A DNA stretch of 63,037 nt, the filler included, from Neoconidiobolus thromboides FSU 785 (lineage: Eukaryota; Fungi; Entomophthoromycota), in NCBI GenBank assembly GCA_025603075.1. It is 13 parts of 13 records of this genome, joined end to end, with 100 filler letters (N's around TTAATTAATTAA, not from the genome) between each part and the next. Parts side by side here need not be neighbours in the genome. Positions count along the whole stretch, not along the records: positions 36,192 to 43,865 come from MU626700.1; 12 more parts are not named here. One strand, given 5' to 3'. The position numbers and the translations under genes were made by a program. The notes beneath the pieces were generated by a model that saw nothing but the letters and a program-made list of their open reading frames with translations, was not told where the DNA came from and searched no databases. Shown piece after piece: positions 36,192-43,865 of this stretch (the stretch's first letter is position 1; every line of letters starts with the position of its first letter).

Positions 36192-36286
36192 TTTCTATTG
36201 GCCAAGTATTGAATTTCATTATATCAACCCATCAGTTAATATATCACTAAGTTTAAAGACCTCAAAGTCCTAGTATTTACATATAC
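36192..36286 (+). repeat. 95-bp exact inverted repeat, left arm (partner 43771-43865)
   Basis: TTTCTATTGGCCAAGTATTG...TTTACATATAC is the exact reverse complement of the last 95 nt of the same contig. Confidence 0.95.
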
Positions 36287-36453
36287 AATTCTGTCACTAT
36301 CTCATACCTTTTTTCCAAGTTGATGATGCTAGAGAATATTCCAAATATAGAAAACTCAAATTATGGAGAGTTGAGCTAAGCAAATACTCTTAATTATCTA
36401 AACATTCTTTTAAAATATTGAAAGGAATTGGATAGAATACCTTTTAATAAAAA

Positions 36454-37144
36454 ATGACAATTCGAAGTGTTTATTTTATCATTTTGCCGTTAAGTTTATT
36501 ATCTTATGTATTAATAGTCATCAATAGTTTTTATGGGAATTTTATTAAAGTTATAAAGATGAATTCAAAAGGGGATTTCACTAGAATTGAATATGGAATG
36601 TATTTTAAATGTAGTTATAAATATCAATTAAATAAAGCTGAAAAATTTTCATATCAATGCCAACTAATACCCGACTTTTCAGATGCCATCTGTAAAAAGG
36701 ATTTTGATGTTTGTTTATTATGGCAAGTTATTGGATCTTTAAATATGTTAGCTTTATTTATTGGGTTATTTCTATTTTCATTAAATATAAATATACTATT
36801 GGGGAAATCAAGGTTTCGATCAATAGGCTGGGTATTGCTATTAATTAATTTAGCTGTATATGGTAAACTATACTAACATATCAAATTAATTTAAGTTTTA
36901 TTTTAATTAAATTTTATTAGGCATTTCAAAGTTAATTATATTACTCGTAGTTAATAATATAAATAGTAGATTTAATAATAGTGACTGGATCAAAATTGAT
37001 TTTGGCTATAGTTTTTATACTATAATAATTAGTTTATCCATTGATTTTTTCATATTGTTGCTCTTAATTTTATCCCATTGTTTAATTAAATTTTATTTTC
37101 AAAAACGTCAAAGTATAAATTATCAAAGTATAAATATCAATTAG
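36454..37144 (+). CDS. Four-TM claudin/SUR7/PMP22-like membrane protein; exons 36454-36862 and 36921-37144
   Basis: N-terminal TM, YGMYFKC..C..C..C extracellular loop, three further hydrophobic segments after splicing. Confidence 0.6.
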
Positions 37145-37235
37145 ACCATTATAAAAATATAGCGGTTAGTTTAGATAAGTTAAAATTGTGTAAAATAAAG
37201 ATAAGTCATTTGTTTTTATTTTCTTGTTGAATATT

Positions 37236-38184
37236 CTATGCTTTTTGGTTCTTATTTGCTTTTTTTGCTTTCTTTCCTTTATTTTATAATATTAATATAA
37301 ATTAAACTTGAATTTCATATCTGAAATTACCTAATTTTTCAGTTTCTATATTGCTTGTTTTTACTTCCCTTTTTTTATTTTCATTAACTTGATCTTCAAA
37401 CAAATTTAATACTAATACGACTAAAAAATAAAATAAAATTACCCTTTTTATTTTCATTAATTTCCTTTTTATCTTCGATCTTAATAGCATCGGTCGCTTT
37501 GGATTCATTCTTGTTTTGATTTTGTTGATTCTTTTTTCCTTTTTGATTTTGATTCTTATTTTGTTTGACTTGTATTTTCTTATCTACTGCTTTAGTGCTA
37601 CCTTCAGTTTTAAATATTTTTTTAGCATCAACTTCATGTTTATCCTTATTATCAGTGTCATTAATCACATTTAAATTTTCAACTTGTTCTTCATCTAAAA
37701 TCAATTTATTACCTATTTAAATTAACTGTTTACTTAATTTACCATTCCCGTCCTTCAATTTGTTCGTGAGCATTGCTCTCCTTTCTCTTCTTGCTACTCT
37801 CGCTCTTTTTTTCTTTGGTTTATTTTCCTTTTTCTCCATAGCTCTTTTTCTTAACATATGTTTTTTAGAATTCAAATGAAGCTCCAAATCTTGTTTTTTA
37901 TGAAATAATTTATTGGGACATAATTCACACTTCAATTCTTTATTTTCGGATAGTTCTCCAGCTATACTTTTGGCTATTAATTGTAGCTCTTCTTCTGTAA
38001 TGCTAAGATTAGTTAAATCTTCTTGAGTGATGGATTCATTCGAGTTGGAAGAATCCTCATTATCAGATACTTCGGATCCCGATAGACTTTTGTTTGAGCT
38101 ATCATCCGATTCATTTTCACTACCACTATCCGAATCCCATCCCTCTTCTTTAACTTTAATTGCTTTTTCAATCCTTTTAAACAT
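37236..38184 (-). CDS. Acidic/Lys-rich low-complexity protein with one U1/matrin-type C2H2 finger, multi-exon
   Basis: CELCPNKLFHKKQDLELHLNSKKH; introns 37742-37695 and 37442-37394 keep the frame; 3' end tentative. Confidence 0.65.
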
Positions 38185-38308
38185 TCTTATTTATTTTAGA
38201 AAAAGAAAAATAGAAAAGGAAAAGTAATTTTCAATTGTTGAAATATTACACTTGAAAAAAACTTTTATTGAAAAATTTATCTCCAACGAAAATAACAAAA
38301 ACGATAGT

Positions 38309-39339
38309 TTAATTCATACTTTTTAATAGATAATCAAAAATACATACAATAGTAGATAAAGCAACAATGGCCATTGTCCTAAATAAAAAACAAGTTCATT
38401 TAAAGAGAAACAGAAGGATAATAATAAATTCAAACTTACCAGAGATAACCAAAAGTATCAGACCAACAACCAATTACTGGAACATCTGGCATCACATTTC
38501 TTAAGTTAGGAAAAGCGAACAAGATCATTGCACCTAAAGGCAATAAAAATGGATTTGGTTTCAACTTCAATAGTACCATTTTACAAATAATAAATAAATA
38601 GGCAAATGATAAGCACCACATAGCAAGCAATATTAAGATAGTAAAACACAGTACTGTGGTGGAACGTCGAATATTTATGTAAAGTAATTGGGTTTCTTCT
38701 GAATCAATATCTGAGTCATATGTTAATTCAAAACCTTGGGTTTGAGTCTCAAAGACTAAATTTGGTGAATACATATTCTCTTCTTCATCCCATATACCAT
38801 ATTCTAATAATGATTGATATTTATCAAATGGATATAAAGATAAATCACCAGAATCAAAGTTGATCGTGTCATTAAAGTCCCTAATTATAGTAAGTTAGAA
38901 AGCTGTAAGTTTTTTTTGGATAGGTTAGTATTGGTTTTTACCATCGCCAGTTATTTTTTAGTAGTTTAACTTGTTTTTTGGTATTAAAAAAATAAGTAAT
39001 CTTTCGGGAAGGAAATTGAGACTCTGTATTTCGCTTCAATGTATCTCCCATGAAAAATGAAATGCTTAAATCAAGTTGGTGTTTTTTACTATTCACTTTT
39101 AATACTTTTAAATATAAATTAAAGGAATCCGTATTTTTATAGGCCGATTTTCGTATCTCATTAATTGTACTTTGCACTTCTGTTTCTTTAAATTGAATTA
39201 AACTTATTGCTACAAATATACTATAAAATATTATTAAACTTAAGATTATTATTGTATATTGAAATTGAACTCTTTTTAAACTTTTAGGTATTTGTATTCT
39301 GTTAGTTAATTGATAATAAATATCTCTAATGTTTTTCAT
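38309..39339 (-). CDS. DUF4436-type membrane protein; exons 39339-38942, 38880-38440, 38378-38309
   Basis: GDLSLYPFDKY, INIRRS, LFAFPNLRNVMPDVPVIGCWSDTFGYLW fit the DUF4436 pattern as I recall it; N-terminal TM plus three C-terminal TMs. Confidence 0.75.
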
Positions 39340-39551
39340 TATTAACAAATTTTAAATAAACTATTAATTTATATCAATTAGAATCAAAATTATAGAACAA
39401 AAACAATTAAAATCAATTTATTAAATTTTAACATTTAAAAATAGTTAATTACTAAAAATAGTAAGTTACTACTCACATTCAAAAAAATATCTCATTCAAC
39501 AATTCATTAAAATCCAAATATCCTTAATTCATTAAAATATTAACTTAATTA

Positions 39552-42500
39552 CTATTTAGATCTTCTTGATGATCTACCAAAAAAAACATTAAAAACCATT
39601 TCTTTTTTTCTAAAGTAGCATCAAATCTTTCTGTAATATCTTTATCTGCTCTTAATATAACTGAAGAAAATACTACCGCTAATTAAAATATTAAACAATT
39701 GATTTACTAATTTGTTGTTAATTTACCTAATCTTTCTAGCAAAAAATAATCTTCATGATTAGAATGAGCTACTACTTCTTTGATTAAAGATATTATATAA
39801 ATAAATGTATTTAAATGAACTCTTGGCATTGTTTCTAAAGCCTAATAATGGTAATAATAGTATTAAAAATAATGTAATTAAAAATACAAATTGTTACTTG
39901 AGTAGCTGCTTCTTTACCAATAAGAGAAGCTTCTAAACATAAATCATATAAATGAAAAGGAATAACAGGAATTGGTAAAGCTTCTAAAAATCGAATTAAA
40001 GTTTCTGCCATTGAATGAATACCTTGCTTTGAAGGTGGAGATATTGGATCAATTGGTGGCGGTTCAAAATATAATTGTAAATTATCTTTTTGTAATGAAA
40101 TATCGGATACTGAAGGTAATAACTGTTCAGAATCAATCAGTAATCTAGCTAGATCAAACTCGTTTCCTGTATCTAAACATTCTCTTATATAAACCATTGT
40201 TTCTTGTTCTCCTGGATTTAAAAATAAATTTTCCTAAATAAAGTAATATAATTAAAATAATTAAATAGATGCTATTTATATATGATAATGTAATTAGTTT
40301 TACTTACTACATCCATTCCATATTGATAAATAAAATCAGCCATTCTCCATAAAACATGAGGTACAGATACCATATTGTCAATTGAAAATAATTCACTAGT
40401 ATTTGACATTTGTCTAATTGGTCTAGGTAATCTGGCTAAATATTCTAAAGGCACAGCAAAACAAGTTGGTAGATAATTTCCACTGATTGATATAAAATAG
40501 TCTTTACCCCTTACTAAATGTAATATTAGTATATCTTCCAAATTTTCTTTACCCATATTTAATGTTGGCGCTGATCTTCTATCAACTAGCATAATAAAGT
40601 TTACTCTTAATTTTTCACCTGGCATAATCATACCGTTGGATGGATTAACCCAAAGCCATGGTTTACATATATTTGATTCATCCATTTTAGGTATAAATTG
40701 AAATTGTAAATAAACTTGTCCTGTGTTTTCTATTGTCATACTTAATTCTTTAGAACATAAATATTTGACTTCTCCAAAGTTTAATTGAGAACAAGAAATA
40801 GAAGCATCTGGCATGATTTGATTCTCAAATTTATCTAATTCTCTTATCAAATTACCATGAACTTCTTGAAATTTATCTAATAAGAAAGTCTTAACCCGTG
40901 CTCTAAAGTGAGCTGATACAGGTTTGTGATCACTTGAAGTTAATTCCATATGGGCTTTATAACTTAATTGTTCCATTACTCCTTCTTCATTGTCATTTTC
41001 ACTTTTCCATAAAATTCTATCACAATAAGATGGTATTCTTTTTTTTTCACTAATGTAATAATACTAATTAATCAATTATTATAATAATGTTAATGACATT
41101 AAATTACCTTGAATCAAATTGATTTGTTCCAATATCATATTTATAAGTTGGTTGAAAATCAATATCACCTTCTTTAAATCCAACAAATACTTTACCTGCG
41201 GATTGTTGTAGTTTCAATTGATCATATTTTAATAAATACTTATAATCTTTATTCTTTAACCTTGAAATCACTTGATCTGAAGATAAAGACAAACGATAAT
41301 TAAGATCTCCTAACCAAATAAGATGACTATAAAAATAATTGTTATATTGATAAATGTATTATTATCATTATTAAATTAATTATATAAATTGACTTACTCT
41401 GAATCATAAATAGAATTTAATTTTGGGTTTCTTGGTAATGTCATTACATTGGTTTTAAAAAAAGGGGAAGGATTAAAACCATAACCTAAAGGTAATATAG
41501 TACCATTTGGACCAATTAAAGGTGGTGGTTCAGGAAATCCAATTCGTCGACAAATATCCATAAAATCTTGATTTCTTCTTTCAACTTGTGATGAGTCTGC
41601 TGCTAAATGTGAATTTATAAAACAAAAATAACTATCTTTTAATTTAATTCGAATTGCTACTGCTCCTTTATTTCCCTATTATGTATGTGTGTATTAATTA
41701 GGCTTATTTATTATATATTTCTATAAAATTAGATTAATAAAAAGCAAACCTACCATCATACCCATAATACCTACTCCAGCAGAATCTAAAGATATATCCG
41801 ATACAGAAGAGAATAACTCATTTTTGATAAAAATAACTAAAAATATTCCGACTAATTGTTTTGATATTAATTTTGTATATCGGTCTTTAATCTCTCCCAA
41901 TCCTTCTGTCACTGCTGTACACCATTCTTCTTCCCTTAAACTATCATGCATTAAAAATGCTTCTGCACTTAAATCTAACTCTTGAAATCTAATAAAAATA
42001 TTTAATATTTAATTATTATTAATAATTAATATTACCCTAAAACATATAAATCAGGCTCAATTTCGCTATCATTAAATAACCAAGCACTTAATGGTTGATT
42101 AGAATATTTTCCATTAACATTCCATGTTCCAACGAATATACTTTATAATAACAATATCATTAAATTATACTATATCATGATATATTGTATCTTACTTAAT
42201 ATGCTCATAGTTAGTAAATTGAGCTTCCCTTTCTCTCATTTCTTTAGCTACCCATTCCTCTTTAATTTTTTTTAATCGTTTGTTATTTTCTTGTTCTAAA
42301 CTTAAATTATCATCAATCATATTAGGACTAGCCATTACTAATGGATTCATTAAATCATTAATCGTACGTGTTTCTATTTATATTATAATAAATTGAATTA
42401 AATTAAACTATAGTTTTACCCGAAGCTTTGATATAAGGTGATAACGGGGACATTGGATTTGAAAATGTATTTGCTCTTGTATGAGCTGGTGAGCTTGGCT

Positions 42501-43444
42501 GTTCAATTACAGAATAATATTTAATCCAACTATGGGTTATACCATCAGGACGAAAATTATGATTGACTTTTTATTTTTGGTTAAATATTTAATATTTAAT
42601 ATTTAATGTTACCTGCACTATTAATTAACCTTTTGATTTCAGCTACTAAAAATTGCAAACTATCTTTGGATTGTAATTCTAAATTTAATTCTTTTTTCAT
42701 ACAACTTATCTTTATAAGCAGCTCTAAACAAGTGTTATTTAATGTATATAATATATTTGTATTCTAAAATTACCATTCTTTGATTCATTAATTGATGATT
42801 CATCATCTAAATTCACTGGTTTACTTTGAACTTTCAAATAAATAATCTATTCAAAAAACATATAAAAAAAAACCTTACAAATGGATATTTTAAAGTCAGA
42901 ATAAATCGGTAATGTAAATCTAATCGTAGTTGAACGAGGTCCATTTCTTTTTAATAAAAAAATACTAAAAATAAAAAAGCATTAATTTGTTCCTGTATTT
43001 GAATTTAAACTAAACCCACCAGCTCTCCTCTCCAGAAGCTTCTTTATTAATTATAACAGCTAAGAGCCTTTCTTCTTTCAACCCAGAAGATCTAGTATAT
43101 TTCACTTCACAACACATTAAGCATTCTTCTGTTGGTCTTAACAAACTATTAACTAATTCTTTTAATGGTAATCCAGTGATAGAGCTTGGTCTTTGGCCAG
43201 TCGTAAACGTAGCTGAAGAATAATTATTTGATTTGGATTTAATAGAAGTTTTATCTTTTATATCTAAGTATTCTTCTTTAGCTTCTTCGATCTCTTTTTC
43301 TTGCTTTTCCTTTGCTGTATCTTCCTTTTCTTCTGGTCCTTCATCAGAGTTCTTTTCATGCTCTTCCATTCCTTCGCTCAGTTCTTTCTCATCTCTTTTC
43401 ACTTCTAAATCTAGTTCTTCAACCTTTTGTTCAATATTCTCCAT
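39552..43444 (-). CDS. OCRL/INPP5B-type inositol polyphosphate 5-phosphatase (PH-like, 5-phosphatase, ASH and RhoGAP-like domains), ~13 exons
   Basis: IFVGTWNVNG, GFQELDLS, GNKGAVAIR, NSHLAA, WLGDLNYR, PTYKYD, PSYCDRILW, SDHKPV, GKDYFISISGNYLPTCF, FLEALPIPVIP. Confidence 0.92.
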
Positions 43445-43770
43445 TTAAAAAAGATGACTTCTTTTTTGTGGCGAGAATTCAGTTTAGAAAATAACTGAAA
43501 GCACGTGATTTGATACCAAGTTTTTTAAAGTTTAGTTTAATTGTGCAATCGTTTTGAAATTGCTAATAAATTGAAGTTAATTTATTAACTTTGACTTTCT
43601 GTTGAACTCAAAGTGGAAACAAATGATCAATTTGTTTAATATAGAACAAAATCTTTTTTTTAATTTGAGAACATTTACCAGATTAAAACTTCACCCTACC
43701 CTAATTATGGTTTTTTGTTTTAGTTATGTTTTTTATCTCACTTTTCTGTTTCTTTTTGTGTGGCAGTACC

Positions 43771-43865
43771 GTATATGTAAATACTAGGACTTTGAGGTCT
43801 TTAAACTTAGTGATATATTAACTGATGGGTTGATATAATGAAATTCAATACTTGGCCAATAGAAA
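43771..43865 (-). repeat. 95-bp exact inverted repeat, right arm
   Basis: Reverse complement of 36192-36286. Confidence 0.95.

Follow-up and report, generated by a model that had tools for sequence, protein, structure and literature searches.

A DUF4436 protein of the fungus Neoconidiobolus thromboides as a candidate divergent relative of the pentameric ligand-gated ion channels

Introduction

The ion channels of the pentameric ligand-gated type (pLGICs) are among the best-studied receptor families. All members known to us carry their fourth transmembrane helix, M4, at the C-terminus. In the prokaryotic members GLIC, ELIC, sTeLIC and DeCLIC, a cysteine-less β-sandwich ectodomain directly precedes the helices M1, M2 and M3, no large cytoplasmic domain is present, and the chain carries a Y/F-P-x-D loop tip, an arginine just before M1 and a proline in the M2–M3 loop. 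These traits, the fold as predicted, recur in a protein of the DUF4436 family encoded by Neoconidiobolus thromboides FSU 785 (Entomophthoromycota), which is the subject of this study. Its gene lies on the minus strand at positions 39339-38309 of a stretch of 63,037 nucleotides (hereafter the window; 13 parts of GenBank assembly GCA_025603075.1 joined by filler), in the AT-rich piece 36192-43865 (about 26% GC) that comes from record MU626700.1. The explanation that we find best overall, and hold with moderate confidence, is that this four-helix protein is a very divergent relative of the pLGIC subunit, with the order of the helices rearranged and the coupling device kept.

A kingdom-wide inventory did not detect pLGICs in fungi or in multicellular plants (PMC4795631). 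It also gives the conserved positions of the superfamily: the loop motif F/Y-P-x-D (P 100%, D 93%, E 3%; Jaiteh et al., Table 1, PMC4795631), an aromatic residue in β9, the pre-M1 Arg (94%), a Pro at position 14' of M1 (77%) and the M2–M3 Pro (88%) (PMC4795631). DUF4436 appears once in the searchable literature, within an expression table; our search there returned no match for PF14494/IPR027948, no paper linking DUF4436 to pLGICs (a link that may exist in fold databases) and no structure-based connection between pLGICs and fungi. If a family of fungi and actinobacteria had the fold and the coupling residues of a pLGIC subunit, the picture of pLGIC distribution would change, and a natural 'M4-first' or M4-less variant would be a way to test M4's part in assembly and gating. 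The finding would also supply a domain of unknown function, which occurs at no fewer than 325 bacterial species loci and in many fungi, with a function-directed hypothesis.

Protein layout and conserved residues

A sequence-only reading of the window had called the product a DUF4436-type protein with pLGIC-like motifs, an extra N-terminal transmembrane helix and no M4. The family assignment is borne out by exon 2, which matches Pfam DUF4436 (PF14494) with 73.7 bits (cut-off 23.2; E 2e-20; profile positions 91-231 of 255), whereas exon 1 alone gave no significant match in Pfam or NCBIfam; by sequence, the window protein is a bona fide, divergent member. The motifs were all found on the minus strand at the positions given in that reading (the hairpin, YPFD at 38834-38823, RR at 38669-38664 and the M2–M3 loop), and hydropathy agrees with the helix count, placing one transmembrane helix (TM0) at residues ~28-50 and three helices after the ectodomain. 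No fourth C-terminal transmembrane helix is visible by hydropathy: the chain ends about 5 residues past M3, and the fourth helix is the N-terminal one. The joined 302-residue translation was used for length, hydropathy and family alignment, while searches and fold predictions used single exons or database relatives, above all P0023 of Basidiobolus ranarum. The elements of the protein are as follows.

39190-39258, minus strand: TM0, the N-terminal transmembrane helix (residues ~28-50), with six Lys/Arg before it; proposed M4 counterpart (Kyte–Doolittle peak 2.9; helix 13-41 in P0023).
39055-39123, minus strand: β1-turn-β2 hairpin FNLYLKVLKVNSKKHQLDLSISF, which the alignment places on P0023 model strands 58-69 and 74-84.
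38823-38834, minus strand: YPFD (residues 149-152), loop tip between the sixth and seventh strands and equivalent of the Pro-loop; HMMER puts it onto YPFD/FPFD of the pLGIC Cys-loop.
38664-38669, minus strand: RR (residues 204-205), end of the last β-strand before M1; R205 is the family's pre-M1 Arg (column 98% Arg, aligned to the pLGIC pre-M1 Arg).
38571-38660, minus strand: M1-equivalent helix (residues ~207-236), with a near-invariant MW and without a mid-helix Pro (helix 74-103 of the exon-2 model).
38496-38537, minus strand: M2-equivalent helix (residues ~248-261), short, ending in LFAFPNLRN (helix 115-128 of the exon-2 model; family F 98, A 94, P 94 and R 100%).
38466-38495, minus strand: M2–M3 loop VMPDVPVIGC, with the near-invariant family prolines and Gly, followed by an invariant Asp at residue 274 (family alignment, exon-2 model).
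38324-38465, minus strand: M3-equivalent helix (residues ~272-298), split in the DNA by intron 2 (hydropathy; exon-2 model helix from residue 139; P0023 helix 260-287).

Conservation was read from an alignment of 105 full-length relatives, numbered as in P0023. The loop tip consists of Y135 (96%), P136 (100%), F137 (85%) and D138 (93%, with E in 4%); the other near-invariant columns are R193 (98%), W209 (97%), F242 (98%), A243 (94%), P245 (94%), R248 (100%), P252 (99%), P255 (100%), G258 (98%) and D262 (100%). M2 comprises about 14-18 residues and is hydrophobic, with a stripe of small residues and the 98% conserved Phe, and is followed in the family by a long invariant R-N-x-Q-P-G-x-P-x-I-G loop. 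In the window protein the corresponding loop, LRNVMPDVPVIGCWSD, sits between two hydrophobic helices, and its prolines P264 and P267 fall in columns conserved to 99-100%. The window protein retains every near-invariant family position: G, YPFD, R, W, F-A-x-P, R-N, P, P, G and D. A chance motif match was ruled out, as the motifs are the invariant columns of the family. TM0 is the least conserved helix, no column of it reaching 50% in the family alignment.

The topology inferred from the sequence has the N-terminus inside, TM0 crossing from inside to outside, an ectodomain of about 155 residues outside, M1 running out-to-in, M2 in-to-out, the M2–M3 loop outside and M3 out-to-in. The N-terminus is placed inside because six Lys/Arg precede TM0 and lysines fill the M1–M2 link, and with this orientation TM0 would cross the membrane in the direction of M4.

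Predicted fold and its nearest known structures

The AlphaFold2 (AF2) model of P0023 was built from a 107-row alignment that includes the window exons. It scores a predicted local distance difference test (pLDDT) of 92.1 and a predicted template modelling score (pTM) of 0.82, and comprises a helix at 13-41, about ten strands between 47 and 193, and helices at 195-225, 231-248 and 260-287. The predicted fold is a β-sandwich ectodomain followed by a helical bundle, in keeping with the pLGIC architecture proposed from sequence, and two independent aligners, with AF2 and ESMFold models, rank pLGICs as the nearest known structures, so that the likeness to GLIC and ELIC suggested at the outset has held up. 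Foldseek returned at least 500 PDB matches at E ≤ 1e-3 with the P0023 model, of which the best 50 are all pLGICs (GlyR, GABA-A, ZAC; E about 5e-9; 290-330 columns; template modelling (TM) scores 0.3-0.42). VIA-align, which does not depend on Foldseek and covered 48,161 representative chains, likewise placed only pLGICs among its best 20, over about 210 residues spanning the ectodomain and three helices. Its Z-scores were 10.8 for ZAC, 10.7 for GABA-A, 10.2 for GLIC, 10.0 for GluCl, 9.8 for sTeLIC and for nAChR, 9.4 for DeCLIC and 9.1 for ELIC, and the prokaryotic pLGICs aligned over about 200-214 residues. The GLIC match joins P0023 57-291 to GLIC 18-284 (210 residues, root-mean-square deviation (rmsd) 5.5), and the nAChR ectodomain alone reaches Z 7.8 over 134 residues. 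When VIA-align was run on Foldseek's 1000 best chains, 625 reached Z ≥ 8 and the highest value was 11.2. Eukaryotic Cys-loop receptors (GABA-A, GlyR, nAChR, ZAC and the cephalopod chemotactile receptors) are the best structural matches by both measures (E 5e-9, Z up to 11.2), with about 12-17% identity in the structural alignments.

Exon 2 of the window was also modelled by itself (146 residues, pLDDT 91), giving strands followed by helices at 74-103, 115-128 and 139-145. All of its best 50 Foldseek matches are again pLGICs, at weak E-values (0.008-0.05). In VIA-align, generic helical hairpins dominate at Z about 6 and pLGICs appear at ranks 22 and 35; rows that span the fragment in full come from GABA-A (140 of 146 residues, chain 129-287) and sTeLIC alone.

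In the ESM Atlas, a bacterial DUF4436 cluster is nearest to the AF2 model of P0023 (TM 0.81), followed at ranks 2-4 by three bacterial clusters that are unnamed or named DUF4436 (TM 0.57-0.65). The nearest named neighbours outside DUF4436 are Neur_chan_LBD clusters (TM 0.48-0.51, about 220 residues), and the order of neighbours is unchanged with ESMFold's own P0023 model. The clusters at ranks 2-4 have no Pfam family in common; two are from Pseudomonadota (one of 58 members, and one of 142 that is auto-named DUF4436) and the third, of 73 members, is from Acidobacteriota. Judging from the models, they may represent other branches of this superfamily that lack annotation.

Sequence link to pLGICs

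Three profiles were compared with all PDB sequences, two built from the DUF4436 alignments A1 and A3 and one, A2, from ten bacterial members only. Exon 2 alone found nothing meaningful among PDB sequences; pLGICs were reached by the family profiles only. A1 and A3 rank pLGICs first, namely the octopus chemotactile receptors 8eis and 9e6b (E 0.0011-0.0025), with squid CRB1 (E 0.03-0.09) and the pH-gated chloride channels 9rgm-9rgp (E 0.13-0.6) further down, and the bacterial-only profile has the GABA-A pi subunit first (E 0.03). Eukaryotic Cys-loop receptors are thus the best matches in sequence as well (E 0.001-0.03), and YPFD is identical in the cephalopod receptors. The profile alignments keep register from the Cys/Pro-loop to M1, with YPFD on YPFD/FPFD and the family Arg on the pre-M1 Arg. 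The claim that the protein carries hallmark pLGIC residues is supported in this way, by motifs that are also near-invariant columns of its own family.

DUF4436 shares five of the seven pLGIC signature positions; the comparison covered all but the β9 aromatic, and the M1 Pro is absent. The substitution pattern of the loop Asp is nearly equal in the two families (D 93%, E 3-4%). The distance from the Arg to the Pro is 59-62 residues in DUF4436, compared with 55 in GLIC. The DUF4436 ectodomain is shorter than that of GLIC (about 155 versus about 190 residues) and has only two short strands between β2 and β6; relative to the prokaryotic pLGICs it is some 40 residues shorter and has fewer strands in that interval. 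Unlike eukaryotic Cys-loop receptors, DUF4436 proteins have neither the disulfide cysteines of the Cys-loop, nor an M3–M4 cytoplasmic loop, nor M4, nor an N-terminal ectodomain helix.

Distribution of the family

With exon 2 as query, an exhaustive phmmer search reached 476 representatives at E ≤ 1e-3. Identity over exon 2 is 32% for the nearest non-self match and exceeds 35% for none, and over the full length it is about 25%. The window protein shares its length and its layout (N-terminal transmembrane helix, ectodomain, three transmembrane helices) with the rest of the family. Named relatives are mostly fungal and also include two volvocine green algae. Within the fungi, the family occurs across phyla: the carriers include the chytrids Siphonaria and Rhizoclosmatium, the Blastocladiomycota Paraphysoderma and Sorochytrium, the Zoopagomycota and Kickxellomycotina Basidiobolus, Neoconidiobolus, Thamnocephalis, Dispira and Dimargaris, and the basidiomycete Mycena.

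Some members hold two DUF4436 units in tandem, namely P0002 (Siphonaria sp., 631 residues), P0003 (Edaphochlamys debaryana, 771 residues), P0011 (Dispira simplex, 513 residues) and P0149 (791 residues), and P0005 of Chlamydomonas incerta (2627 residues) contains DUF4436 segments. Either genuine fusions or gene models in which tandem paralogues were merged may account for these proteins.

Bacterial gene neighbourhood

A scan of one genome per species with the 10-row bacterial alignment gave 325 loci, and neighbourhoods were counted in 80 of them. Nearly all of these 80 belong to Actinomycetota (Kitasatospora, Streptomyces, Microbacterium, Agromyces, Actinospica, Solirubrobacterales). Compared with these bacterial members, the window gene is eukaryotic, has two introns and lacks an operon context. 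The 6-kb flanks of 22 of the 80 loci contain a PAD_porph (agmatine-deiminase-type) gene (E about 1e-100). In about 18 of the 22, drawn from at least two orders, it is directly upstream and shares the strand, the stop and start codons overlapping in some cases. Examples are L013:4510-5751, L014:4646-5818, L026:4658-5812, L065:4706-5839, L043:4568-5776 and L058:4481-5683, and about 12 more loci are alike. The deiminase-type proteins begin with a twin-arginine translocation (Tat) motif (S/T-R-R-x-x-L) and a lipobox Cys; these signals make it probable that they are lipoproteins exported to the side of the membrane where the DUF4436 ectodomain lies. Several Actinomycetota loci hold two or three deiminase-type genes.

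This association suggests concrete candidate ligands. As the only functional clue, it makes agmatine, polyamines, guanidino compounds or a reaction product the candidate cue or cargo.

Interpretation and alternative explanations

On the evidence of the models, the DUF4436 fold is very probably pLGIC-like, and it is likely that DUF4436 proteins and pLGICs share a common ancestor. The best-conserved residues of DUF4436 would correspond to the interface between ectodomain and membrane in pLGICs, that is, the Y/F-P-x-D tip, the pre-M1 Arg that pairs with its Asp, and the M2–M3 Pro. Because these residues are conserved in both families, the same coupling device appears to have been kept, which would transmit ectodomain changes to the M2 and M3 helices. 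TM0 may play the role of M4, with which it would share both orientation and low conservation; having the lowest conservation among the helices, it would fit a lipid-facing peripheral position. A circular permutation, in which the extracellular C- and N-termini of a pLGIC were joined and the M3–M4 loop was cut, would produce the order TM0–ectodomain–M1–M2–M3, and from the predicted topology this idea is coherent. Subunits would then assemble into a ring and form either a gated channel or a transmembrane signal transducer for a small extracellular cue. The best guess for this cue, from the actinobacterial neighbourhood, would be an amine or guanidino compound, or pH.

That DUF4436 proteins form an oligomeric gated ion channel is possible, if short of likely. 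Somewhat more tentative is the complete proposal that they are a circularly permuted, 'M4-first' branch of Pro-loop receptors whose rings are channels with an amine, a guanidino compound or pH as the gating signal. If this is true, fungi from chytrids to mushrooms, some green algae and hundreds of Actinomycetota species would join the carriers of pLGIC-type receptors; in Actinomycetota the channel would work together with an exported agmatine-deiminase-type lipoprotein.

Several observations weigh against the favoured reading, and the loss of M4, the short hydrophobic M2 and the absent loop C also speak for a first alternative. According to this alternative, the pLGIC-type fold was inherited and does not conduct: the ectodomain binds a ligand or a protein, the three-helix bundle merely anchors or signals, and the protein serves as a receptor, a signal transducer or a docking partner, for example for exported enzymes. 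In comparison with prokaryotic pLGICs, M4 has been lost and an extra N-terminal transmembrane helix is present. Compared with pLGICs in general, the β9–β10 turn is tight and loop C is absent, and M2 is shorter and very hydrophobic, with no obvious polar ring. The M1 14' Pro is missing, no conserved Pro being found in the M1 columns of the family and none in M1 of the window protein. The window protein itself lacks the family's β1–β2 Asp (the hairpin turn has Asn in the D69 column, which is 83% Asp) and the Glu before M2; the P-x-G that follows β2 in the family is also wanting. The tandem doubles among fungal and algal members, if real, fit poorly with a strict five-fold ring, and a Tat-exported deiminase-type lipoprotein in 22 of 80 actinobacterial loci suggests a partnership at the outer face. 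A mere anchor, however, would have no need of top conservation at the ectodomain–membrane interface, which in pLGICs serves gating (PMC4795631), and the small-residue stripe of M2 together with its 98% conserved Phe is compatible with a pore face. We regard a non-conducting protein of this kind as rather unlikely.

The second alternative denies common ancestry, taking DUF4436 for an unrelated β-sandwich-plus-helices protein whose likeness to pLGICs reflects convergence or a bias of the predictor towards the many pLGIC structures in its training set. The remaining objections to the favoured reading are mostly matters of score. Structural similarity is moderate (Z about 10-11, rmsd 5-6 Å, Foldseek TM-scores of 0.3-0.42 and hence below 0.5), far under that of true pLGIC pairs. 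In addition, the fold was transferred to the window protein from P0023 (27% identical to exon 2, 21% to exon 1) and from the exon-2 fragment model. Neur_chan_LBD (PF02931) and Neur_chan_memb (PF02932) were matched neither by the window exons (E ≤ 1) nor by P0023 (E ≤ 10), and neither is among the 25 Pfam families listed for the other 105 members of the alignment. Searching the ESM Atlas by language-model features yielded no named match that could be used. The HMMER E-values are borderline, from 1e-3 to 3e-2, and the four-residue motif drives much of the score, since an antigen-binding fragment (Fab) with YPMD also reaches E 0.03. Against this, the three profiles, one of them bacterial-only, independently rank pLGICs first, in the same register and with comparable spacing from loop to M1. 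The match covers two domains in the same order, with coincidence at five of seven signature positions, and AF2 (with the 107-sequence alignment) and single-sequence ESMFold agree, at TM 0.8 to bacterial DUF4436 models. Unrelated origin is, in our judgement, very improbable.

Gene structure, transcription and selection

The gene starts with an ATG at 39339 and ends with a stop codon at 38311-38309, as read from the sequence; the joined coding sequence has 909 nt (302 codons plus the stop) in three exons separated by two introns.

38942-39339, minus strand: exon 1 (residues 1-132 and two bases of W133), encoding the cytoplasmic N-terminus, TM0 and the first half of the ectodomain; open frame from the ATG, with the GT donor at 38941 used in 4 runs.
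38881-38941, minus strand: intron 1, 61 nt, GT..AG, phase 2; exact 61-nt skip in transcript contigs X1, X2, X3 and X6.
38440-38880, minus strand: exon 2 (residues 133-280), the DUF4436 core, encoding the Pro-loop, β7–β10, the pre-M1 Arg, M1, M2, the M2–M3 loop and the start of M3; Pfam PF14494, fragment model.
38379-38439, minus strand: intron 2, 61 nt, GT..AG, phase 2; exact skip in one X3 contig.
38309-38378, minus strand: exon 3 (residues 280-302 and the stop), encoding the remainder of M3 and a short cytoplasmic tail; the junction GYLW/TMAIVA matches the family consensus GFFWxxxxVA.

Intron 1 is exactly spliced in contigs from four public runs of three studies, one run being 100% identical to the window and the others coming from close relatives. 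Intron 2 is spliced in the contig of one run (X3) and retained in those of X1 and X6. Because the contigs skip both introns exactly, the gene is transcribed and spliced as modelled, with some retention of intron 2. All 29 coding differences listed between the window and the related organisms in the transcript contigs are synonymous and none is non-synonymous, whereas intron 2 varies between relatives (in X6 by 7 substitutions and 3 insertions), a pattern that points to strong purifying selection on the coding sequence. A mis-called gene is ruled out by the transcript splice joints and the 29:0 synonymous pattern. The sole database protein from the contig, P0001 (142 residues), ends at GYLW by reading into intron 2; this public gene model is truncated, lacking exon 1 and M3.

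Neighbouring genes

Immediately upstream of the DUF4436 gene, a multi-exon gene on the minus strand (39835-43444) encodes an OCRL-like inositol polyphosphate 5-phosphatase, whose separate open reading frame (ORF) pieces match Exo_endo_phos2, an OCRL-like ASH domain (E 1e-42) and RhoGAP. On the other side, 37717-38184 (minus strand) encodes an acidic, Ser-rich protein of 155 residues with one C2H2 zinc finger (JAZ/zf-met type) and a basic tail, for which all Pfam matches are under the gathering cut-offs. A candidate ORF of 140 residues without a Pfam match lies on the plus strand at 36454-36876 and has hydrophobic N- and C-terminal segments and several cysteines. Transcript contig X1 extends from the DUF4436 gene toward the zinc-finger ORF at 37717-38184.

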